This document shows, in pieces, positions 7,075 through 32,536 of a stretch of 64,000 bases of DNA. Source of the DNA: Asterias rubens. Taxonomy: Eukaryota. The stretch covers positions 8,246,001 through 8,310,000 of the forward strand of contig NC_047063.1 in assembly GCF_902459465.1 (NCBI RefSeq), given 5' to 3'. The notes under the pieces were generated by a model. It saw only the letters and a list, made by a program, of their open reading frames with translations, did no database searches and was not told the DNA's origin. Position numbers and translations under genes: made by a program. Each line of letters begins with the position of its first letter. Within the stretch, counting starts at the first letter, position 1.

Positions 7075-10000
7075 GATGACCCCACCAAAGAAAAAGAGAT
7101 TGCTACATACAGCAAGGGCCAGTACTTTGGAGGTAGGTTTTGTAGTAAAAATAATAACAAGTTCTTATATGCATTTTGTTGAGTCAAAAATTTGACTTCA
7201 TAAGATGGCATGCCATGTTCGTTTCAAGGAAAATCGTGCAATTCTTAGGCATATTTGTGTGGATCATTGTATTCTACTCTAAAAATATCTCTCTATCCAT
7301 GTGCATTTTATAACAAACAGTTTCAAGCTTTTGTCATAGACCAACTAGCCTGATCCAATGCCAACAGGTCCCTTTAAAGCCAAATGACACGAGTCCAATT
7401 AATAACAGAAATGAATGCTACTTCTGCGTTTGTTTCAGTATAAATCAAGAGTTTCCAGGAGTCTATTTTATCTTGTTACCTTGGGCTTTTCAAAAACTGT
7501 TTTTCATTTTCTTGTTGTCGAACAGAGCTAGCTTTGATCACAAACAACCCACGTGCTGCCTCAGTTTACTCTTGTGGCTCCGTCAGATGTGCCTGTAAGT
7601 ATTCAAGCATTGTCAAGGGTTCTATCAATTTGTACATATATCTGACAGATTATGTATCTTGTACTAGTATCTCTTTGTTAACCATCACATATGAATGTTG
7701 GAATGAACCTGCTCCCCCTTGCCTAACTGAACTTGGCACTCCTTACCAGCCCATAGGCCCACTCCGTTCCAGTTGTCGATTTCACAAAACTCTTTCTAAC
7801 TTAGGATTAATCTTATGACTTAGGACAAGTCCCAACCCTGCACTGTAGCATGCTGACCTTAAGATTAATCCTAAGTTAGGACGAGTTACTCGTCCTAACT
7901 CGAGATAAGACGAGTCCTTACTCTTTGCGAAATTGGCAGCAGCTCAGATACAAGGATTCTCACAAGACCTCAAACCAGATACTCTTCATCTTGCCAGAGG
8001 TTTTAATGCAGCTGCACAAACAAATAGGTCATGCTATTTCACTTACTGAATTCAAAACATCCTTTATAACTCACCCTTTCCAGACCTATTTCGTGAGAGG
8101 CTATTTATTTCATTTTCATACCCTCATATTGTTAAAAACAATTGCTTTTATATCATTGTTGTGAAGTGTTTTTGTACCTTTTCTGTGCAAAAACGCTTTA
8201 AAAATGCTTAGATTATAATTATATTTGTCCTTTGCGATATTTGTTTATCTTAATCTAATCCAAAACTTCATTTTTTAATAAATTGTATGATAGAATGTAC
8301 AGCATGTTCTGTCTTTTAAACCTTTTATGTAATGTGTTTCTTATTTTTCTACTTCTCTGTGATTACATTTACATTGCTGATTGTCATCATTAAGTGATGA
8401 CCAGGGGCCGATTTCACTAACGTCTATGTTTGCGATCATCGCTAACACACTTGCTATGAGATCGCAAACCTCAAATCCATCGCAATTGCGATGTCCCTAA
8501 TTCTGCGTTTCACTAAAGTCATCACAATTGCGATGAGGTTAAAAGGGAAATCAAGTTTTTGTACGAGGCTAAAAGTAGTGACCTTTGACATCCCGCAACA
8601 AAATCGTCGGTCGTCGCTCGTAATGAAATGGCATTGTGCAGTTTATATGTAAATCGTTGTCATGTTGGTGCACACGAACTATTGTGGACGATGTTTAGGC
8701 ATTTACAAAGGGTTAAAGCATTTATAGGCCTATGGCCTCTATTATAATTTTAGATTTTAATAAACAGTTTTCGTAAATCTGTTGTAACGGTGGGATAGAT
8801 GAAAATTCTGACATATATCTGTCTAATAATACTAAGCTTCACTCTGTCAATTTGCCAATACATTACACATTTTTTCTAAAAATGATGGTTAAAATAATCG
8901 AACCCATATAGTATCTCCTTTTTACCGATATTAAGGGGCTCTTTGCTGCAGTTGCGTCGCTGATAGTTGTCATCGGCAATCTGAGTCTACCAGGTAAAAG
9001 ACCGCAAGACTAAAATAATGTAGCGCCACTCATTTTACTCTAAATCACGGACAATTTATACGTCAAAACGTACACCGCTATAACTATAAGCATAGAATGG
9101 CGCAATGTATCATAAGTTTGCGATGAACTTTTACTTTGCGACCACTAACATCGCTAAATAAAACTTTGCGACGAGTATATTCACCGTTAAGTTTTAGTGA
9201 AATCGTTGGCTAAAAATCCATCGCTAAGTTGCGATGGATTTTAGATTTAGCGAGCGATTTCGGCGTTTGCGATGACCAAAGCGCATTAGTGAAATCGACC
9301 CCAGGATTGTAGATGGGAATGCGTTTAAAATATACTGTGACTTTTTAAAAGCAATATTTTCACAGAAATCAGGGAAAGTACTGAGTATACAGTGCTTAAT
9401 TCACATCGGTGTATGAGTAAAAGACATCATATTCTTTATCCCGATGCAAAAATAACATCTATTATGTTGTATTTTCATCTTTTGTTTTCTCCTTATACCA
9501 ATGTGTGTAAGCACTGTATGCTCAGTACTTCCCTGAGTTCTGTGAACAAAAGGCATTCAATCCCACCTGAGTAATAAACCTGTGGTATAAAGATGCACTT
9601 ATTTAACAAATCAACTGTGCATTTTTGTTTTGTTACCTAGTAGGCCTACATCTTGTATTAATTTGTATTTTGTTGTCTTTGTTTCTCTACAGCACATAGG
9701 GACATGTTTTAGCTCTTATTGAACAATTAATTAATGCATTTTTGTTTTGTTAACAAGTAGGTCTACATCTTGTATTTGTATTTTTTTTTTCTTCTTCTCT
9801 ACAGCGCATAGGGACATGTTTTAGCACTTATTTTTGAAACAATTAATTCATGCATTTTGTTGTTGTTACCTAGTAGGCCTACATCTTGTATTTGTATTTC
9901 TCTACAGCGCATAGGGACATGTTTGAACACTTTGTGTTATTCGTTAATTATTATATTAGACAGTGCTTACACAGGGGTCAAACCAAATTAATATTATTCT

Positions 10001-10510
10001 CACATGATATGTAATGGTTCAGTTTAGGTATTGGTTCAGTTGTAGATGTGAATATTATTTGAAATCATTAATCAAATTGAAATTTGTCAGTTTTTGTTTA
10101 GAGACATATTGTGGCTTGTAGTGTATTTTGTACTGTATTATGGTAAAACCAAACTTAATGTAGTTTTTGTAAGTTTGATATAAAGGTTGCGAATCGAGGA
10201 TAATAAATTGAAATTTTACTTTTTGAGACATGGTGGCCACTAAAGAAGTACACTGTGTGGCTTTGGTGTACATGTATACAGACATATTTACCTAAACCTT
10301 ACAGTGTTGTAGTAATGTCTCCCCCATATCTCAAAATGGCTTAATATTGAATTGAACTATCAATAAATCTTGTCTCTTTCCTTCCATAATCCAGTCCTAG
10401 ATGTGAATGCATTCGAGAGGTTGCTAGGTCCCTGTATGGACATCATGAAGAGGAACATCGGACACTACGAGGAGGAAGTAGAAAGAATGTTCGGCAAAGG
10501 ACCCAAATGA
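7075..10510 (+). CDS. PRKAR2: cAMP-dependent protein kinase type II regulatory subunit, 3' part (last 3 coding exons; CNB-B domain)
   Basis: Exons 7075-7132 ([19 protein letters not shown]), 7526-7594 ([23 protein letters not shown]) and 10395-10510 ([38 protein letters not shown]). All have AG/GT boundaries and consistent phase. GQYFGELAL..PRAAS is the phosphate-binding cassette; [16 protein letters not shown] is typical of RII. No upstream exon was found in 1-7074. Confidence 0.96.
7775..7935. mobile_element. Hairpin-rich MITE fragment
   Basis: Perfect 20-bp inverted repeat CTAACTTAGGATTAATCTTA / TAAGATTAATCCTAAGTTAG, plus the palindrome TAGGACGAGT-TACTCGTCCTA. Confidence 0.7.
8405..9301. 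mobile_element. About 900-bp non-autonomous PIF/Harbinger-like element with CAG target duplication
   Basis: TIR GGGCCGATTTCACTAA / TTAGTGAAATCGACCC, CAG on both flanks, and subterminal TTGCGA/TCGCAA arrays. Confidence 0.8.
9618..9930 (+). repeat. Triple tandem repeat, about 117-bp unit
   Basis: TGCATTTT..GTTACCTAGTAGGCCTACATCTTGTATT..TCTCTACAGCGCATAGGGACATGTT starts at about 9618, 9735 and 9851. Confidence 0.85.
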
Positions 10511-22302: not shown

Positions 22303-25300
22303 CTAATAAGTCTTGATTTTTCTGATCTTGCTTTGTTGTAGTCGAAGTGCGTTGCTGATCTCGGCCATCGCGGCTGATGAAGAGTTACTCAGGCATCGTT
22401 TCTTCTCTTGCTGTCTGCTCACTTTACTCCCAAAACTCATCTATGAGAAATGAGTAACATAAATTCAGTTAAAGGTAATGTTGTCAATGGGAGACTTTTG
22501 GGAACACAGTAAGAAAGTGTACAAAAGAGCCCAATTTTGTAACTTAAGCACAAAAACAGAATTATAATTATCAGAATAAGAATAGCAGCCAAACTACCAT
22601 GTCACATGTACAATTTTTGATTGGTATCCTGCTATTTTTTTGCTTAGCAGAAAAATGTTAAGCAATATTTTCTGCTTTTGGCCTTGTTTAGGCAAGATGA
22701 TGAAGAAAATGACACGGGAGGTATCCGTGTCTTATATGCAATCTGTTCCAGCTAAGCCAGCATCTTACTTGCTTAGCAATTTTCTCTGTGCTTACCAGCT
22801 TTAAAGAATTGTGTCAAATGTAACTTACGGAAAGTGGCTTGCGGGTAACCACCGTCTCATCACTGCTCTCATCATCATGTATTATCTGGATGTAAGGAGT
22901 ACTGCAGATATCTGAGCCTCTTGTAGGTACAACTTGTTCCTCAAAGACATCCCTATGGGATTGTTGCTTCGAACTGGACTTCTGAAACCCTGATGACAGA
23001 TTTATTGAATGTACTAATGTTACAGTAAAATACACGATAAAACAATTATTCCCCTCTGCCCATTCTTTGCTTTTGTAAATTTGGACTTGGAAGGTAATTT
23101 TAAAAAGTCTTGATAAAGATACTTACAAGGTGAATCGGGCAGTTTCAATGAGAATATCATGTCTTCAGAGCTGTCTTCGTGATCCGAGTAAGATGGCATA
23201 GTGTCTAGACTCACTGCTGATGGCTGCTTAGCTGGATTCATTGAGGTTACTCCTAAACAGATACAGAAGAGAAAGACTGGTTTACTTGGCTAAGTGGTTT
23301 CTTTCCTCATCTTCCAAATCTTGGACCCTAGTTTGAACCCTGCCCTGGGCACTATGTTTTCCCTGGAAAAATACACCTTTAACTAAAACTTCACTCCTTG
23401 TTCTTTCTCCAAATTTTGGTTATTTTAGTGATTAAGTTCTGAGAATTCACAACTAGAATTCACAACTAGAATTAGTATGCTGGTCTCAGTACTTTAAGGT
23501 TTATTCTGATGGGAAACTACTTAACTGACCCCTCTTTCAAAATAAATCTATTCCAATTTTGAAAAACCATAATTCTGCATGTGAGATGTTTATAAACAAG
23601 ATGACTCCAACCTACCTTTGATGGTTTGTTTGGATGCTTGTTTGTTTTTTCTTTGCACCTGCTTCCTTCTGACTGGTTTTGAAGCTGGCTGATGGATAGT
23701 CACCACTTCCATCTCAGATTCATCTCGAGAAACCAACCCCTGTCTCAAGTCTTCAGCCCAAGTGCTCTGAATCTCAGCTACAGAGCTACTTTTGCATTGC
23801 ATTTCCTTTGATTTCTTATTCGTCTGATTCTGTCGACTCTTCACTAACTTTTCTTTCGGGGCTTTGATGGAGCTGGCACTCAGACTCTTTGCACTGGTAA
23901 CTCTCTTCTGTGAATAGATGTTATCATTCTGCGACACCTTTGTGGAAGCCTTTCGCTGACTCCTGCTGTTCTGCCTTTCCTGTGGGTTTTTCTCCTTTGG
24001 TGCTTTTCTCTTTCTCACCACTGGAAGAGTTTTTTGAGGAGGTTCAATAAACTCATAAACATCTTCCTCTTTCAACCAGTGGCAGGCCTCTGGGTCCTGG
24101 AGAGGCTTTGTAGTGTTGACTTCAGAGACTGTTTGACTGTTTCTTGTCTTGATACGTGGTTGAGTTTCTGGCTTCTTCTTCATCTGGTTAGCTGTGTCAG
24201 GATTAGGCTTCTTAGCTTTGACTCTTGCTGACTGCCTCTTGGACTTTACTGCAACCTGGTATGGCTTCCTAACTTTCTTCTTTCTTGTAGGAGCTTGAAG
24301 GACTGGTGCCTCATTACCCTGATTGGTTTGTTGTTCTTGTGTGGGAAGAACAGCTTCTTGAGGCTTCATCACTTGGGGAGCGACAGCAGCAATTGGTGAT
24401 GGCCTCACCTTGTTCGCATTCCACCGTCCAGATGTGGTGGCTGAACTTGTCGGAGACATCAAATGAGGTACAGCTTCATGTTGCTGTTGAAAGTGGAATC
24501 CAGATGGTCTACCATCTGGGCCAAGATTGCCACCTCCTTGATTTGAAATTGGCAACCTAGGTTGAGTCACAGCTGGTTGGTTGTAGGTGTAAGGAAGACC
24601 ACACTGTGGGTAAGACTCTCTGTTTTGGAGACTTGGCTGTGCTGGCCATGGTGGAAGCCTGACATTGCTACCATGGTTGAGGGTTGGTTCAACCATCTGA
24701 CGAGTAGCGCCACCAATCAGATGATAGCTTGGATGAATCTGATTGATCATACTCTCTTGATGTCTGCTTCCTGACTGAATCTGACATCCGCTCTGCTCAT
24801 ACTGAGCCACGGCTTGCCAGGAGCGTGGTCGATTGTCGCCGTCCATAATCGGTGCTGCCATTAACCTTTGACCTGACTGCAGACCTCGGACCCTCTTGTC
24901 GATGACCTCTGATGACCCGGCTTCATTATGGAGACTTCTCTGATGTTGATCCTGTTGAAGCTGTTGGATCTGTGTCTTGCAGAAAGCCTGTTGTTCCTCT
25001 TGCATCTTGTCAATGTGTTCTCTGTTTATCTTTTGTTGTTCTGTGTACACCTCCATGAGAGAGTGTACGACACGCTCGTCACGCTCTTTCTTGGCAGTTT
25101 CCAGTTGCATCTCAAGAACCTCAATCTTGGCATCTTTCTGTGGAATTTGCAAATATTCCTCTATAAAATATCATTCAATAAAATTTAAATCAACAATATC
25201 TCAAATGTAAGGCTGAAGATCAATCATATTATGAAAAATAATTTACTGCATCAGTTTGCATCTTGTTATTATTAATCGTAAAGATTTGAGATGCTCCAAA

Positions 25301-28153
25301 TAGTCGCAATGTTTTATAGTTGACAGGAATTACTAAGGATATAAATACGCTGACATACTATCTGGAAACTTCAATCAAAATCAAATCTCAATATAATAAA
25401 TCTGACCTTCAACATTATAAAGGGAGAAAATGAAATATAAAATATTAGTTTGATAGTGTCTTACAGCAGCAATGTTTTGAAGCAGGTCTGTAAGTGTGGC
25501 CTGCTGGTCTTCTGTGATCTTCATTGCACCCAATAACTTCACATGGTAACTTTTCAGATCTTCATTTACTGAGAAAAAAAGACATAAACAAGTCGGAACA
25601 TGAATAAGAATTTTTGTTAATATTAATATTTTCAACTCCCATAATAAGCCATAAACCTTTTAGTCTGTATTCATTAGGAAATTGTTGACTCGAATGAGCT
25701 TGATATGGTATACATTCGAATTCAGAAGTTCTACAAAATATCACTTCATGCATTCGTTTTGACATTTTGATAATAATATTTTCAGTAAAAATATTGTAAG
25801 TAAGTACAAGATTCTAACATCAAGTGGGGTATACAAGAAACGACTTAGGTACTATACAGCATTCAATTGAAGATTATATAACAAACAGTTTTATTATGCA
25901 CAACATTGCTATAAATAACCTATCATGCTATTCCTGTCGCAGAAAGGTGCAGGGCCATATAGATTAGGCTAGACAATAATTATATCTTATCAACAATGTT
26001 CACAGGTGAAACCTAATACCCAACCTACTTTTCTGAATAAGATCGCCGAACTGACTGGCTGTATCGGAGATATTTTTATCAACATTCTTTCTGATGTCCG
26101 TAGCAGCGGATCTGACTTCCTCAGTGCAATCTTTGACAAGCGTAACAAAGGTGTTTATCAGGTCCCTGGACGAAAGGGAAGAAGAAAATGGGACAATGTC
26201 AAGGAAGACACAATATTGATTCTTTAAAATGTCACTGCGATGTTATTCTTGTCTTTAGAACGACAGATGGAAAAGGTTAGCGAGGATTGACCTGAATAGA
26301 TTCATAACGATTGAGATCTGAGAGGAATACAGGAATGAAACAAAAAATGATTCAATGAAACATTTCTTCAATTTGAAAAGGAAACGTGTCAACATATTTA
26401 TGAACAGGAAATAACAAGACAGATGTGAAGTCTTGCCAAAACTTAAGAAATGATGAAAGTATAATAATATAACACATAATTTGCATAAAAAAGTGCAATG
26501 AACTGATATTTTATCAGTAGGATTTTAAACTTTGCATGGAGGGGGTATAATCAGATGATGTTTGAGTTGCACCATGTATAAATCTATTTTGAGTAGTGTT
26601 GGTTCTGAAATAGAACAAGTGGTTGACAACTCAATGTTTTGACCAGTATGCTGTGATCATCTTCAGGATGCTGCTGGACTCTGTTGCTGAATGCCGCTTA
26701 AGTACTGCCTTGGAGATTAACTGGTAGTTGGAATTGGCTCAATAAGCCTTTTTGAGGTATGGCGGACCCAATGCTACAACACTGTAAAGTTGTGGTAAAT
26801 TTGTGCGTATTGACCATAGAAATAGAACGTATGTTATTCAGTGAAGTGCGCATTTTAGGCGACGCAGCATTTACACGTAAACCTAATGACCACCAACATA
26901 GTGAGCGTGGCATCAGTCGCGGCGTGTGATGCGCGCGTATCACGTCCGCCATACCTTAAAAAGGCTTATGCTGCTCGAACTAGGGAAGGAGTTGAGGTTA
27001 GCTCGAAAAAGCATGCAGGCTGAAGCTGCGACTGAAACCTAAACTGAAACCCTCTTGGAATGTGTGCTCACTGAACTGAATCAGTGGGTGACAAACACAG
27101 GGAAGGAGAGTTGGGAACCTAGAGGAGACTGAGGTATTGATGACCCAAAACTAAGGATATTTCATCATTCTTGCATAGGCGAGAGAAAAAAGGATAATCC
27201 TAACAGAATTGTATGTCTCAGTACCTGTCATCTCTTTCCTTTGCTTTCTGTTTATTATTCTCTAATCGCTCTTGGAAACTTCTTTTTCTTGGCTGAATAT
27301 TTCTGTCAGATTCTTTGTTGAAGAGCGGTGCCTTGGACATGTACTTCATGTAGAACTTTTGTGGGTTGTTTGCACTCTGTTGGAAAAAAAGGATTTTGTT
27401 TTATCTACTTATACTTTCTGCCATGGAAGAGCTACTTTTATCCGGGTTGTTCATTTTGATCTTCAAGTTTAAAAATGAAACCCTTTTTTGAAATTGTCTA
27501 AAAGATAAAAAGTGTCTTTAAATAGATTCAAATGATCTTTTGTTATCTAGAGAAAGGATAAAAGTAGGAAATACATTGTTGCAATTAGAATTATGGCAAT
27601 GCTTTTACTTAAAGGTAGGATCAACGTTTAGCAGTGCTATGAAATTGAAACCGTACAGTAAGCACGAAATTGGCCGCTAAGCAGCTCTATGTAGTCGGGC
27701 CCAGATAAACAGTTGCCTGATAGTACCTCTGTCTGCTGTGAAACACCCTGCGACATCATCATCTGTGAGAACATGTCGAAGGAACTGGATTGTGAATTCT
27801 CCATCTGGGAATTGATCTGAGAGTTACTTTGACTCAGAGTCTGACTGGAATTAAAAGCTGAATCCTCTTGGTCACTTCTGAACCCAGATCGCTGCAGAAA
27901 CTGACTTTAAAGCAAAAATATACAAACAAAATTAAAAATCAAATAATGAATGGTCATTGTGGTCCAGTGTAAGGACTGTAGTGATTAAATTACTTCACAT
28001 AAAAATGGCATTACAGGAAAGAAGGCCTACATTATAAATCTGGTTTTAAATTTATTCCCTGTTAAAAAAAGAAAGGTTTAAGAAAAACAGTATTAGTACT
28101 CACGCTGGATTGGTGCTGTAGAGCTCCTTGGCACTTAGTTGATTGTTAAACAT
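22303..28153 (-). CDS. IHO1: Interactor of HORMAD1 (IHO1/CCDC36, Mer2 family) meiotic DSB factor, 855 aa model
   Basis: Coding exons 28153-28104, 27904-27727, 27376-27225, 26165-26029, 25568-25465, 25137-23616, 23252-23127, 22989-22829 and 22440-22303 (2568 nt, all GT-AG, phases consistent). N-terminus MFNNQLSAKELYS, an S/Q-rich stretch, then KFYMKYMSKAPLF...FQERLENNKQKAKERDD, which resembles vertebrate IHO1 SIFTKYQTKPQLF...LEQFEEKKKRAKDKCD (recalled). A coiled coil and a long disordered tail follow. Lies head-to-head with C3orf84. Confidence 0.85.
26745..26966. mobile_element. MITE family A copy in an IHO1 intron
   Basis: Same TIRs and internal sequence as 2017-2243, in the opposite orientation, flanked by TA. 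Confidence 0.85.
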
Positions 28154-28619
28154 ATTTGACTTTGATGTTAGTCACTTTGTTTGGACTTGGAGACTGTCTT
28201 TACAAATCTGAAGAAAAATAATCCAAACTTTAAATTTAATAAATAAAACATCTCAAAATCAAATCAATACAACGGTGTGTATCAATTTTCTAACTAAGCC
28301 TTCCGTCACTCGTCAGCATACCCCATTTTTAGAAACAAAATTTCGAGTTGTTTATTGGTTAAATACCTGACAAAAGAGTGGCAAAAAGACGTTTCAACAA
28401 ATCACCGAACAAGTTTCTGACCCGCCGAATCACAATGCATTTTGCAGTCCGGCTCGGCTGCACACTTTGACTTTCGCGGAGCAGACGACATTTTTCAAAT
28501 CAATCAAAACACTTTTCAACATTTTGTTTTTCAATAAGAACTCAGAGTAATTGTTGAACGCAGTTAAGTTTCTCAAACAAACACTATAATTGTAAGATGC
28601 TTCACAAGTTATTATCAAT

Positions 28620-29075
28620 ATTCACACACACATTTTAAGGAAAAAGGCGCAATTTAGTATCCTGTTTTCCCTTACGACAAAATTTTCTCTTTTGCGCTGC
28701 CGCCATCTTGGATTTAAATCCCCAAACTTTTCAATACCTACTGCGCATGAGCAAAACACTACGCAACGTCACGCCTACTTTTGTGTCATGCAATCTGATT
28801 GGCGCTTGCGCCTTTGCTGTTGAATATTCATACAGGCACTGGCGACGGCCAGTTTACTTCCGCAAACAACATTGGCAGCCCCTGGAAACGACCTTTGGGC
28901 TAGCGGCAGTAACAATTTTCGATGTCAAATAAACCAAACTTGTGCCGCAAACTTTCGTAAACTAATGACTTCCATATGCTTTAGAGTATTTACTGAAGAC
29001 ATGTTGGTGAAATAAGGTTGTTACTTTCACAAGATATAAGATTATTTTGGCGTTAGAAATCGCCATAAGCAAGGA
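28620..29075. promoter_or_regulatory. Bidirectional CpG-rich promoter shared by IHO1 (-) and CIMIP7 (+), including the probable non-coding first exon of IHO1 (about 28730-28676)
   Basis: CpG-rich segment with a YY1 motif (GCCGCCATCTTGG, 28699-28711), an NRF1-like TGCGCATGAG (28742), a CRE half-site ACGTCA (28766), ATTGG (28798) and an ETS site ACTTCCG (28856). Minus-strand donor GTAAGG at 28675. Confidence 0.7.
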
Positions 29076-32000
29076 TGTCGAAGACGAAGACGAAGACTGC
29101 GCACTTTACACAAGGGAGTTGGGTAAGTGAAGTTTGTATATAGTATAATAATTAATACACGTGTGAGTGTGACTATTTATTACATTTGATTTGAGATTTC
29201 TTGTTCATGTGTAATTATTCTCAACAGATAAGGTAAAGTAAAAACTGTTTTTTAGTTTGTTCAAGTAATTACCATTATTATTATCAATGACCAAATTATA
29301 ATTATAATAATATGACTATTTGAGCATGAATTATATCTTTTTTTTTACAAAAAAAAACATTTTTGTTTTTGTTTATTTTAGATTTGACAATTTTGCTAAT
29401 CTTTTATTTTCAATTATTCATTTTGGGAAAAACATACTTCTCAGTGAGTAAAACATTTTGGGCGCAGAAATCAGAAGATGAAAAAAAGAAAGATTTCAAA
29501 AACATTGAAGCTAAACTTTTTATTAAATTATTATCAGCTAAATCATGATGAAGTAGCTTATTATACCGTACTTAATACCAATGTAAAAAATATTAGGCAA
29601 AAATGTGATATTTTTGTAATGGAAAGCACTGAAACAGTAATTCACTTTGTGCTAATTTGTCAAATTTTTTATTCCTTGCAGTTCCCTTCAGGCTATTACG
29701 GTCATTTCCGGAGTAAATCTAGGAATGATTTCGTGAATGAGTATCGACAGCAAGCGAAACCCTCGCCTCCAGAAAAATTCACCAGGAAACTAACGGTAAG
29801 GATATGAAACAATATCTCTCCAATAATAAGATAAAAATGGATTATATTCTATCCATTGAAGATGAAGATTAGGGTTACATTTTCCAAGATTAGGTTTTTC
29901 CAATACATGTATCATGTTCTGACTTGTGCAAAACGAGCAAATGTTTTGAGAGAATGTTATTGATTGATATTATTGATCTTCCATTGCTGAAAAAGACTTA
30001 CTTTTGTTAGGAGCATGTAGTCGTCAGGGACACACAATTAAAACATATTGATTCACATGGACAACAAATCCTCCACTGGAAAATCTGACGTACTCTGAGT
30101 TTAGTCACTATGTTCACTCTGTCTGAACTCCGTTCTTTTTAAGAAATTACAAGAGCATAACAGTTGGATATAGTTCAGAATAAAACATATTTTGTTATAG
30201 GGGGGCCTAACAGAGTGCATTTATAATGCACCATATTTGTCATAAATAGACAATCCTGGTGCAGAGTTATCAATTTAGTTGAGCATGATGAGAATTATTT
30301 TATGAAATAAAATAACCCTCGATACATGGTGAGTTGGCGCACATTTTGCCTGACCATTCCGGAAACAAACCCCTTCTCTTTATCATTATGATAATTATAC
30401 TGTTGGGTTCTTTTACATGCATTACTAAACGAAAGATGAACCAGTAATGGTTAAGTGTCTTGCTTAAGTGTCAAGACTCGAACCCACACTCTGCTGATCA
30501 GAAACACCAGAGCTGGATTCCGGTGTGCTTTATTGTTATCGGCCACGACACACCACTAAAGTATCCAATTTATCATAAACTTTGTTAAAATGATTTGTTG
30601 CTTGGCAACTTTTTGTTCAAATATATAAATGTATCCTATAATCAGAGAGTCGTGATATGTCAGCATAGTGTTTATTCAATCAAATCAATGCAGAACGGTC
30701 ACCATCAGATCACAGTGCGGACTTTGTACAACTTGATCTGAAAACCCTATCCTTCCACTGTACACACACAAAGTAAATATTTGTGCAACTCCTATCCAAC
30801 ATGTGCAATGGGTCATTGAATAAATGAATGCTCCTTTAGTCATGCTTAGGTAACAAAGTACATCGCTATTTTATTTGTTGTATTGAATACCATGGACGCT
30901 AAATCTAAAGTACATAAACGATAGGATCGTGTTTGCAAGAAAAACACATTTTTATTTACTTATTGTACACATAGAGATAGAGAAAGTGATTCTAGTTATA
31001 TAATTCAAGTATTGTGTTTAAATATTTGACCACATTGTTTTTGTTATTTCTCCTACTTCAGGCGCGTCCAACTTTACACCACTTTTCTCACCATGACAAC
31101 CGGTTTTCATTCCTGAACACTGTAACATCCTTCCAAGATGTAAGTTCAAAAGTTGTTTACTCGTGGAGGTTAAAGGCCAACTTGATTAAAATCACTCAAC
31201 TTAATTTGACTATTTATCCTTGTTTATCTTTTGCGGCCTTGAAAATAACCCCTGGCACCCACAGCAATTGCTGTGGTGCCTTGTGTATTTGCTGTGGTGT
31301 TATTTGCAAATTTCCAATTCAAACGCAATTTTTTGTGTACATAGAAGTGCCCCTGAAAAAAATTAGCGGTGTCCCTACTTTGATATTTGAACTAGTGTTT
31401 ATATCCCTGTAGGTTTTTCATCAATGACCCATAAATGAAAAGTGAAATCAACACCAGTGCCTCAGAAAACCAGTCCAAGTTATGATGTAACATATGTCGC
31501 AGCACAGACTGAAGGGATATACATTTTCCATTGTCCTTTTTTGTTCAAGTCCATTATAAGATTCCAGAGTGCTGTTTTTTTTCCAAGCAGCATATAGGGG
31601 CTGTTGCCGAAACTCAGCATTTTTGCCCAGCACAACCTCCATCTTTTAATAGTTGGATCCGAAAGTTTTTTTTTTTAAATTTATTTGTTTATATACATTT
31701 TGTTTTCACGATAGGGTCTTGGCAAGAAAAAGGTTCAACATCAGAGGACGGGCAAGTTTACACCAGACTTCATTTCATGGGTTCCTCACAAAAGAGAAAT
31801 AAGAGAAGCCGGTCCAGTTTCATCAGTATACAGAGAAACGTACAGAAACTCAGACAAGAGCAGAGTTCCTCAAGTCCTGGTTCCAACAGTCAGCAAACCC
31901 CCGAAGCAGCTCTCCGCTTCAGCACCTGCATTTCTCCCAACGCCGTATTCAGATCCAGCCGACATGGTTCAAGAGAATCCGGTTACATCCTACCAGATTT

Positions 32001-32536
32001 CTCACAGGCATTTGCAGCCGAATCCAACTGTACACACGAACATGAATACAGGCAGAGTGGAAGAGGATCCGGTCCCCCTCCAGAAAACTCACGTTTACAT
32101 CAACCCTAAGATAGATTCGATTTATGACCGACCCAAACAGCGTGGATCGTTAACCTCGCTGAGGAGAGCTAGAACTGGTTCAGCTCCGTTATTCCGATCG
32201 AGCGTGGCAGATTGTATGAGGTGGCATGTGCCACATGAACCCACCCCTCCACGACCTAAAACTGTTACAGGGACCTTTCCAGAGGTCAGGGGTGCTGAGA
32301 CAGGTTCGCTGGAGGAGATCCGACAACCCATGCCACCACAGACATTAGGTAAAGGTACCGTTTGTCCAACCACTGCATGGACCACACCAAGCCAATCTAA
32401 GCCAGAACAGTCCAGAATGGATGCAAGTGTTGACACCAGACCAATGGGTCAAACCCATAATGGTCAAATGTCAGGAATGGACACAAGTTATTCTAGTTCA
32501 CCGTCAGCTTCAGCAGATGTTCCAATGGCGGAATGA
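29075..32536 (+). CDS. CIMIP7: Ciliary microtubule inner protein 7 (C3orf84 orthologue), 353 aa
   Basis: Exons 29075-29122 (MSKTKTKTAHFTQGSW), 29682-29795 (FPSGYYGHFRS...PSPPEKF), 31062-31139 (HHFSHHDNRFSF) and 31715-32536 (GLGKKK...SVADCMRW...). All junctions are phase 0. Matches recalled human C3orf84 motifs GSWHNNGFYGHYRS, HFFSKHDNRTSF, GIGRRKD and GVSECLNW. Confidence 0.9.

Follow-up and report, generated by a model that had tools for sequence, protein, structure and literature searches.

A 64,000-nucleotide stretch of the genome of the sea star Asterias rubens (contig NC_047063.1, positions 8,246,001 to 8,310,000; hereafter, at its full length, the window) contains two divergently transcribed genes, an orthologue of IHO1 on the minus strand and a CIMIP7-type gene of the HDNR family on the plus strand. 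IHO1 belongs to the Mer2 family and seeds, on chromosome axes, the machinery that makes meiotic double-strand breaks, and the plus-strand gene has, by its name, a putative role as a ciliary or sperm microtubule inner protein (MIP). The pair of IHO1 and CIMIP7-type genes appears to be ancestral to bilaterians and has most likely been kept in invertebrates by a compact bidirectional promoter. With divergent orientation and, in the window, 5' ends less than 1 kb apart, it is a bidirectional pair in the usual structural sense.

The sequence-only reading of the window had proposed a divergent gene pair between positions 22303 and 32536, and both limits coincide with stop codons, the former being the last base of the minus-strand stop and the latter that of the plus-strand stop; the proposed plus-strand ATG at 29075 was also exact. 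The spliced minus-strand translation was identical over 855 of 855 residues to the A. rubens protein LOC117307297 (P0014). RNA coverage was examined over positions 26000-31999 in four runs with coded tissues (X1, X3, X14, and X15). RNA contigs and raw reads showed the IHO1 junctions 27376|27727 and about 26165|27225, and all three splice junctions of the HDNR gene were present in RNA. The HDNR protein differed from that of A. amurensis (P0001) by one KT repeat and three substitutions. In addition, a 6-nucleotide deletion at 29079-29084, corresponding to one KT codon pair, was seen in RNA contigs and reads of X3, X14, and X15; since the deletion agrees with the A. amurensis protein (MSKTKTAHF versus MSKTKTKTAHF), it is a repeat-length polymorphism or a species difference. 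The IHO1 gene is single-copy in the Asterias genome, and the HDNR gene is single-copy when searched for with a profile of its own orthologues.

The start codons of the two genes are 922 bp apart (IHO1 at 28153 on the minus strand, HDNR at 29075 on the plus strand). A strong acceptor 54 nucleotides upstream of the IHO1 ATG implies at least one noncoding 5' exon further upstream; no junction read was listed in the RNA runs for this acceptor at 28209-28208. Two candidates for such an exon were identified (Table 1). Candidate exon A was touched by sparse raw reads of run X14 in 28400-28599, where the strand signal of that run (1-2 reads per bin) was too weak to assign intergenic reads to either gene. 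This candidate holds two conserved blocks, 28481-28490 and 28493-28511, and the second of them matched, with a single mismatch over 19 positions, the part of the Anneissia 5' untranslated region (UTR) that immediately precedes the IHO1 ATG, a fit equalled by 0 of 300 shuffles. Candidate exon B corresponds to the IHO1 first exon that had been proposed at about 28730. That proposal retains a plausible donor, GTAAGG, and a YY1-like site that is positionally conserved in Acanthaster, but no RNA read confirmed it: runs X3, X14, and X15 had zero reads in 28600-28799, and the sole RNA cover of the candidate was one low-depth, unspliced contig of X1 (28345-28967). Whichever candidate is correct, the 5' ends of the two genes are at most about 415-775 bp apart.

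Table 1. Positions of the gene models, candidate 5' exons, and conserved elements in the 64,000-nucleotide window
Feature	Position	Strand	Details
IHO1 (Mer2-family) orthologue, coding sequence	22303..28153	-	9 exons, 855 aa, all introns GT-AG
IHO1 coding exons 1-5	28153-28104, 27904-27727, 27376-27225, 26165-26029, 25568-25465	-	
IHO1 coding exons 6-9	25137-23616, 23252-23127, 22989-22829, 22440-22303 (including stop)	-	
IHO1 5' UTR part of first coding exon	28154..28207	-	behind acceptor AG 28209-28208, read from sequence
Candidate IHO1 5' exon A	28367..28520, upstream limit uncertain	-	donor GT 28366-28365 (GTATTT)
Conserved 10-mer TGTCGTCTGC on IHO1 strand	28481..28490	-	once in the 64-kb window
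Candidate IHO1 5' exon B	28676..28740, upstream limit uncertain	-	donor GTAAGG after 28676
YY1-like site CGCCATCTTG (CAAGATGGCG on IHO1 strand)	28701..28710	-	inside candidate exon B
Conserved block of the putative promoter, 67 bp	28824..28890	.	80.6% identity with Acanthaster, E 1.3e-13
Core of the block, GTTTACTTCCGCAAACA	28852-28868		ETS-like ACTTCCG flanked by forkhead-like half-sites
HDNR gene 5' UTR, minimum extent	28927..29074	+	X3 transcript contig starts at 28927 and spans the four exons
CIMIP7-type HDNR gene	29075..32536	+	4 exons, 353 aa
HDNR gene exons	29075-29122, 29682-29795, 31062-31139 (HHDNRF motif), 31715-32536 (including stop)	+	
PRKAR2 (PKA type II regulatory subunit), last coding exon	10394..10498	+	phmmer against PDB: RII-alpha E 3.4e-14, RII-beta 9e-11

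For the minus-strand gene, a query profile was made by aligning the first 265-285 residues of five echinoderm orthologues and was run against a library of 1.84 billion representative proteins. A total of 68 matches were obtained at E <= 0.001, and the full-length ones were almost all colinear from the N-terminus (residue 1). All 10 tetrapod matches that were looked up carry the name "interactor of HORMAD1 protein 1," with E values between 7e-9 and 7e-4 (lizard, 7e-9; turtle, 1.4e-7; gecko and marsupial, about 7e-7; frogs and a bird were also matched), and matches stronger than those in tetrapods were found in hemichordates, amphioxus, a brachiopod, an annelid, a nemertean, a priapulid, an abalone, and Nematostella. 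When the echinoderm profile was aligned by hhalign with seven tetrapod IHO1 proteins, a probability of 98.8% and an E value of 1e-16 were obtained over 223 columns. In the reverse direction, a hidden Markov model (HMM) built from tetrapod IHO1 only retrieved the window protein at an E value of 5.9e-9 (Z=20000, proteome-sized). On these sequence comparisons, the minus-strand gene is accepted as an IHO1 orthologue, the identity that had been read from the window at the outset; the synteny that had been enlisted to support this orthology proved superfluous, since the sequence profiles establish it directly.

It is extremely unlikely that the minus-strand gene encodes a generic coiled-coil protein whose match to IHO1 is a coiled-coil artefact. 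Such an artefact would be in keeping with weak Pfam matches to unrelated helical families, with the golgin-like, lava lamp-like, and interaptin-like public names of some relatives, and with the Pfam model for IHO1, PF15771, which matched neither the sea-star protein nor any invertebrate relative and gave 320 bits for lizard IHO1. PF15771 is vertebrate-centred, however, and the miss therefore limits the model and does not exclude homology. What speaks against an artefact is that the alignment with vertebrates begins in the nonhelical N-terminus and covers short colinear motifs there (SSFDMFSQ versus SDSQFLFGSQF and FYMKYMSKPPLF versus IFxKYQxKPQLF), that the library matches are colinear and N-terminal and include the tetrapod proteins named IHO1, and that the reverse HMM search was significant. 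Three further searches were unproductive: the Pfam IHO1 model and a vertebrate IHO1 alignment, applied exon by exon in a six-frame genome search, gave no signal, a result that carries no information; a search of the ESM Atlas with the IHO1 N-terminus returned noise only; and Pfam returned nothing on single exons, so that full-length database proteins were required. Invertebrate IHO1 relatives (P0020, P0024, P0026, and P0029) were found to be misnamed in public records as interaptin-like, golgin subfamily A member 6C-like, protein lava lamp-like, bromodomain-containing, and trichohyalin-like.

The sea-star protein resembles the Mer2/IHO1/PRD3/Rec15 family in its disordered N-terminus with short motifs, its central helix of about 150 residues, and its long disordered C-terminal part. 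The AlphaFold2 monomer model contained one continuous 150-residue helix (residues 126-274; predicted local distance difference test [pLDDT] score >90), and residues 1-106 mostly scored <50, in keeping with a disordered N-terminus. The helix is comparable to the coiled coil of mouse IHO1, residues 109-267 (10.1101/2022.12.16.520760). Near the C-terminus, the echinoderm orthologues keep an acidic, Ser-rich block (SD.EDSS.EM.FSLKLPDS, SYSDHEDSSEDMIFSLKLPDSP). Mouse IHO1 binds HORMAD1 via SSM2, an acidic patch with the sequence FDSSDDD (10.1101/2023.11.27.568863), and the echinoderm block recalls it as a possible counterpart. The sea-star protein differs from vertebrate IHO1 in that its acidic patch is not terminal but about 100 residues short of the C-terminus, and in its length of 855 aa versus 572-639 aa in tetrapods. 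The Mer2/IHO1 family surveys that were found cover fungi, plants, mammals, and birds (PMC5695089).

The plus-strand gene had been read as CIMIP7/C3orf84, and Pfam and the names of ESM Atlas clusters bear out an HDNR gene of the CIMIP7 type. The HDNR model PF15115 matched the near-identical protein P0001 with 50.6 bits against a cut-off of 27 (E 3.6e-13), and the sea-star protein shares with the family the HDNR motif and the flanking GLGKKK. Orthologues were found in sea stars, a brittle star, a sea cucumber, and two crinoids, and their N-terminal 100 residues are almost invariant; a 220-residue C-terminal extension sets the sea-star protein apart from the family and is conserved among echinoderms only. 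The nearest named ESM Atlas clusters, "ciliary microtubule inner protein 7-like" and "Uncharacterized protein C3orf84 homolog," are both HDNR and both chordate (score 0.90, 170 shared features), and their names thus tie CIMIP7 to C3orf84 and to HDNR. The HDNR family includes C3orf84/CIMIP7 and TEX36. "CIMIP7-type HDNR gene" is an accurate label for the plus-strand gene, with the putative role in ciliary or sperm microtubules taken from the name. Neither sequence nor profile searches of the PDB, made with the HDNR protein and a paralogue exon, returned a matching axonemal chain, and the AlphaFold2 model of the HDNR domain (pLDDT, 53.6) was too low in confidence for a fold search.

A second, distant HDNR-family gene is present in the Asterias genome on contig C10 (1981934-1982814, minus strand; loci L007 and L008), with the exon motif SVHDNRHSF; it presumably resembles TEX36, and an ESM Atlas search with its exon returned noise only. 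The C10 gene scores on the Pfam model exon by exon, and the plus-strand gene of the window might likewise be another HDNR member, not the CIMIP7 orthologue, and its match to the human C3orf84-IHO1 neighbourhood a coincidence. We regard this as very improbable, because the named Atlas clusters closest to this protein are CIMIP7-like and C3orf84 homolog, the C10 gene escapes a profile of the window gene's orthologues at E 0.1, and a chance adjacency of HDNR and IHO1 genes in human would be very unlikely among thousands of possible neighbours. For C3orf84 itself, microtubule-binding Mn repeats have been predicted only (PMC10973386), and one study reports far lower methylation of the human promoter in testes with normal spermatogenesis than in nonobstructive azoospermia (PMC6926170), which is compatible with activity in germ cells. 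The mouse gene 1700102P08Rik (MAPS), which is needed for pachytene progression, was considered as the C3orf84 orthologue and rejected: the literature identifies it as C3orf62, which adjoins IHO1 on the opposite flank, and its knockout papers therefore say nothing about CIMIP7.

The arrangement of the two genes was compared across species by fetching the DNA that flanks the orthologues and confirming both genes by tblastn or a recorded Pfam call; sea urchins and Ptychodera were left out of these look-ups. The divergent pair was found in the sea stars Asterias (window) and Acanthaster planci, the brittle star Amphiura filiformis, the crinoid Anneissia japonica, the hemichordate Saccoglossus kowalevskii, and the mollusc (abalone) Haliotis rubra, with coding-sequence (CDS) starts 922, 1049, 3735, 1670, 809, and 1707 bp apart, respectively. 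The same neighbours in the same orientation thus occur in Echinodermata (three classes), Hemichordata, and Mollusca, and the head-to-head order was kept in 5 of the 5 ambulacrarians examined. One HDNR exon is 83% identical between abalone and sea star. Since the abalone has the same divergent pair, the pair predates the protostome-deuterostome split and is older than the deuterostome-wide age that had first been assigned to it.

Even within deuterostomes, that first assignment stood only in part: the pair is kept in the five ambulacrarians and adjacent in human, but it is broken in amphioxus, and the bird examined has no HDNR gene in the interval from KLHDC8B to IHO1. In Branchiostoma lanceolatum, a gene for an AP-complex mu subunit lies upstream of IHO1, and no HDNR signal was found. 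In the bird Pithys albifrons, KLHDC8B is followed directly by IHO1 in the same orientation, as the human locus would predict, and the 4.9 kb that separates them gave no HDNR signal, which suggests that CIMIP7 was lost in the bird lineage. No gene was found within 10 kb upstream of the IHO1 CDS in a marsupial and a turtle, a result that is uninformative because vertebrate first introns are long. In the bird (L009) and the turtle (L006), a PRRT3-domain gene follows IHO1 on the same strand.

The human neighbourhood that the sequence-only reading had named for the pair was confirmed for order and distance by the gene table of a genome-wide association study. In hg19 coordinates, this table lists KLHDC8B at 49,209,018-49,213,919, C3orf84 at 49,215,069-49,229,291, CCDC36/IHO1 at 49,235,861-49,295,537, C3orf62 from 49,306,030, and the end of PRKAR2A at 48,885,270 (PMC5822465). 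C3orf84 and CCDC36/IHO1 are accordingly immediate neighbours with a gap of 6,570 bp between gene ends, compared with at most 0.4-0.8 kb between the Asterias 5' ends. The two human genes are presumably divergent in orientation. The linkage to PRKAR2A that had also been named holds in both species: the gene lies 330 kb off in human, and a PRKAR2 exon was found within the Asterias window, about 12 kb from the IHO1 3' end. Human 3p21.31 and the sea-star locus thus share the adjacency of the same two gene families and the linkage of PRKAR2, and they differ in the distance between PRKAR2 and IHO1 (12 kb in Asterias versus about 350 kb in human).

Conserved elements were found in the intergenic DNA (Table 1). 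Copies of the core of the 67-bp block, GTTTACTTCCGCAAACA, that carry 1-3 mismatches were found in Acanthaster, Anneissia, Amphiura, and Saccoglossus, where 0-5 of 300 shuffles were as good, in every case 114-206 bp ahead of the HDNR ATG; the Asterias core precedes the observed end of the HDNR transcript by about 60 bp. The core was not found in the upstream DNA of Haliotis, amphioxus, or the bird. By its consensus, the core looks like an ETS site with forkhead-type half-sites. The intergenic DNA of Acanthaster, Amphiura, Saccoglossus, and Haliotis also carries the 10-mer TGTCGTCTGC in the IHO1-sense orientation; Saccoglossus and Haliotis are two independent tests, in each of which about 0.001-0.002 occurrences would be expected by chance. 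The YY1-like 10-mer inside candidate exon B is also present in Acanthaster, 152 bp from the GTTTACTTCCGCAAACA core, versus 151 bp in Asterias. We take 28701-28710 to be YY1-like on the assumed consensus AAGATGGCGGC. X-box (RFX), TATA, NRF1, E2F, CRE, and E-box scans of the intergenic regions revealed no shared site.

The 12-mer ATGTCGTCTGCT has 157 copies in the Asterias genome, versus 23 for the reversed control, a seven-fold excess. Twenty sampled copies had unrelated flanks, several of which resembled the 5' ends of genes; the 12-mer is not a dispersed repeat, and it may be a promoter or 5'-UTR word. The ATG in ATGTCGTCTGCT opens a 29-codon upstream open reading frame (MSSAPRKSKC...) at 28491-28402 on the minus strand. 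A conserved upstream open reading frame at this site was rejected, as the ATG is not kept in Saccoglossus or Haliotis.

In four ambulacrarians, TGTCGTCTGC and GTTTACTTCCGCAAACA were 371, 365, 417, and 398 bp apart, against a more than four-fold range of CDS-to-CDS distances (809 to 3735 bp). Since the spacing of the elements is held while the CDS distance varies, one constrained unit is suggested, and the elements are compatible with a single compact promoter unit under constraint, about 400 bp long. These facts do not show that any one element serves both genes. We infer a promoter role for the elements, their service to both genes, and germ-line co-expression of the pair. Across the four RNA runs, the transcripts of IHO1 and HDNR were high or low together, with depths of about 58 and 49, respectively, in X3, 8 and 4 in X1, 1-2 and 2-4 in X14, and about 0.1 and 1 in X15; with n=4, this joint behaviour is only a hint of co-expression.

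According to the explanation that we prefer, both genes would be transcribed divergently from one short intergenic region. The head-to-head pair would already have existed in the bilaterian ancestor, and molluscs, hemichordates, and all sampled echinoderm classes would have retained it; it would survive as plain adjacency in human and have been lost in amphioxus and, apparently, in birds. Within about 400 bp, an interdigitated promoter would comprise the 10-mer TGTCGTCTGC on the IHO1 side, the YY1-like site (in sea stars), and the ETS/forkhead-like element near the HDNR start. A break between the genes would then damage at least one promoter, which would explain why the pair persists. The statement in the sequence-only reading that the pair is held together by a shared promoter therefore fits the invertebrates, whose CDS starts are 0.8-3.7 kb apart and whose conserved elements keep a fixed spacing; in human the annotated gene ends are 6.6 kb apart.

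The persistence of the pair might instead reflect neutral inertia, an explanation that is rather unlikely though far from negligible. By this account, an ancestral pair with no functional coupling would have been retained because a gap of <1-2 kb is a tiny target for breakpoints, and each element would serve the nearer gene. The ETS/forkhead-like element is indeed fixed to the HDNR ATG whatever the distance to IHO1, and the 10-mer is also found ahead of IHO1 in amphioxus, where IHO1 has a neighbour other than HDNR, albeit on the other strand and with weak significance. The human genes have stayed adjacent across a wide gap, and the pair has been lost in amphioxus and the bird without obvious consequence. 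Against neutral inertia stands an inter-element spacing confined to 365-417 bp in four ambulacrarians, which suggests one constrained unit, and retention for >500 million years in at least three phyla is long for pure inertia; the co-variation of both transcripts in the four RNA runs also speaks against it.

Several observations weigh against a conserved bidirectional promoter. The IHO1 5' exon has two candidates, A and B, and a low-depth contig crosses the entire intergenic region unspliced. The 10-mer TGTCGTCTGC is the only element common to all pair-bearing species, the ETS/forkhead-like element having escaped detection in Haliotis, and in Amphiura and Haliotis 1.7-3.7 kb separates the CDS starts. 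The human genes, at 6.6 kb, are too far apart for a classical shared promoter, yet they are still neighbours. The co-variation of the transcripts comes from four runs with coded tissues. On the side of the HDNR gene, the MIP role of CIMIP7 is known from its name only, with no matching chain in the PDB, and orthology to CIMIP7 over TEX36 is backed by indirect evidence.

Conserved head-to-head pairs and ancient metazoan microsynteny held by cis-regulatory constraint are an established class. The pair in the window resembles the bidirectional members of this class in its divergent orientation, its short intergenic DNA, its ETS-type ACTTCCG core, its YY1-like site, and its retention across phyla; it differs in that it joins a meiosis-specific gene and a flagellar or ciliary structural gene, and not two housekeeping genes. 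No description of an IHO1-CIMIP7 pair was found in the literature searched (C3orf84/CIMIP7, CCDC36 bidirectional, and IHO1 synteny), and the pair is a previously undescribed, very old, otherwise ordinary conserved bidirectional gene pair. A bolder proposal, which we consider improbable, is that the shared promoter is a germ-line module as old as the Bilateria that would activate the scaffold of the break machinery and a ciliary MIP in the same cells, with the HDNR protein perhaps serving a cilium of meiotic prophase and TGTCGTCTGC being the site of an unnamed ancient germ-line factor. A "zygotene cilium" of meiotic prophase has been described in zebrafish and mouse (10.1101/2021.02.08.430249; PMC9818220), and the HDNR protein may serve such a prophase cilium or flagellum rather than only the later sperm tail.

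Elsewhere in the window, PRKAR2 3' exons were located at 10394-10498 and about 7540-7590, both on the plus strand, in a tail-to-tail arrangement with IHO1. Pfam searches of seven other long open reading frames of the window, a limited test, returned no KLHDC8B or other neighbour and no C3orf62 counterpart. In mammals, C3orf62/MAPS, which is essential for male meiosis, flanks the other side of IHO1, so that three testis or meiosis genes stand in a row. The GC content of the window is about 0.33-0.44, no masked (N) stretch is present, and an Rfam scan of the window gave zero matches. In the intronic segments 26600-26999 and 30425-30520, RNA depth reached hundreds to thousands, and most reads fitted only partly, many with loose ends; these segments look like dispersed repeats resembling short interspersed nuclear elements that are transcribed elsewhere, outside both gene structures.

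The pair provides a firm anchor for annotating the fast-evolving IHO1 across invertebrates, in which its relatives are now "uncharacterized" or misnamed, and the list of invertebrate IHO1 orthologues may be useful in itself. It is also a clean, very old example of a divergent pair with short conserved elements, putatively of a promoter, at fixed spacing, and it raises the question of what has kept the promoters of a meiotic recombination gene and a flagellar or ciliary structural gene side by side for over half a billion years.

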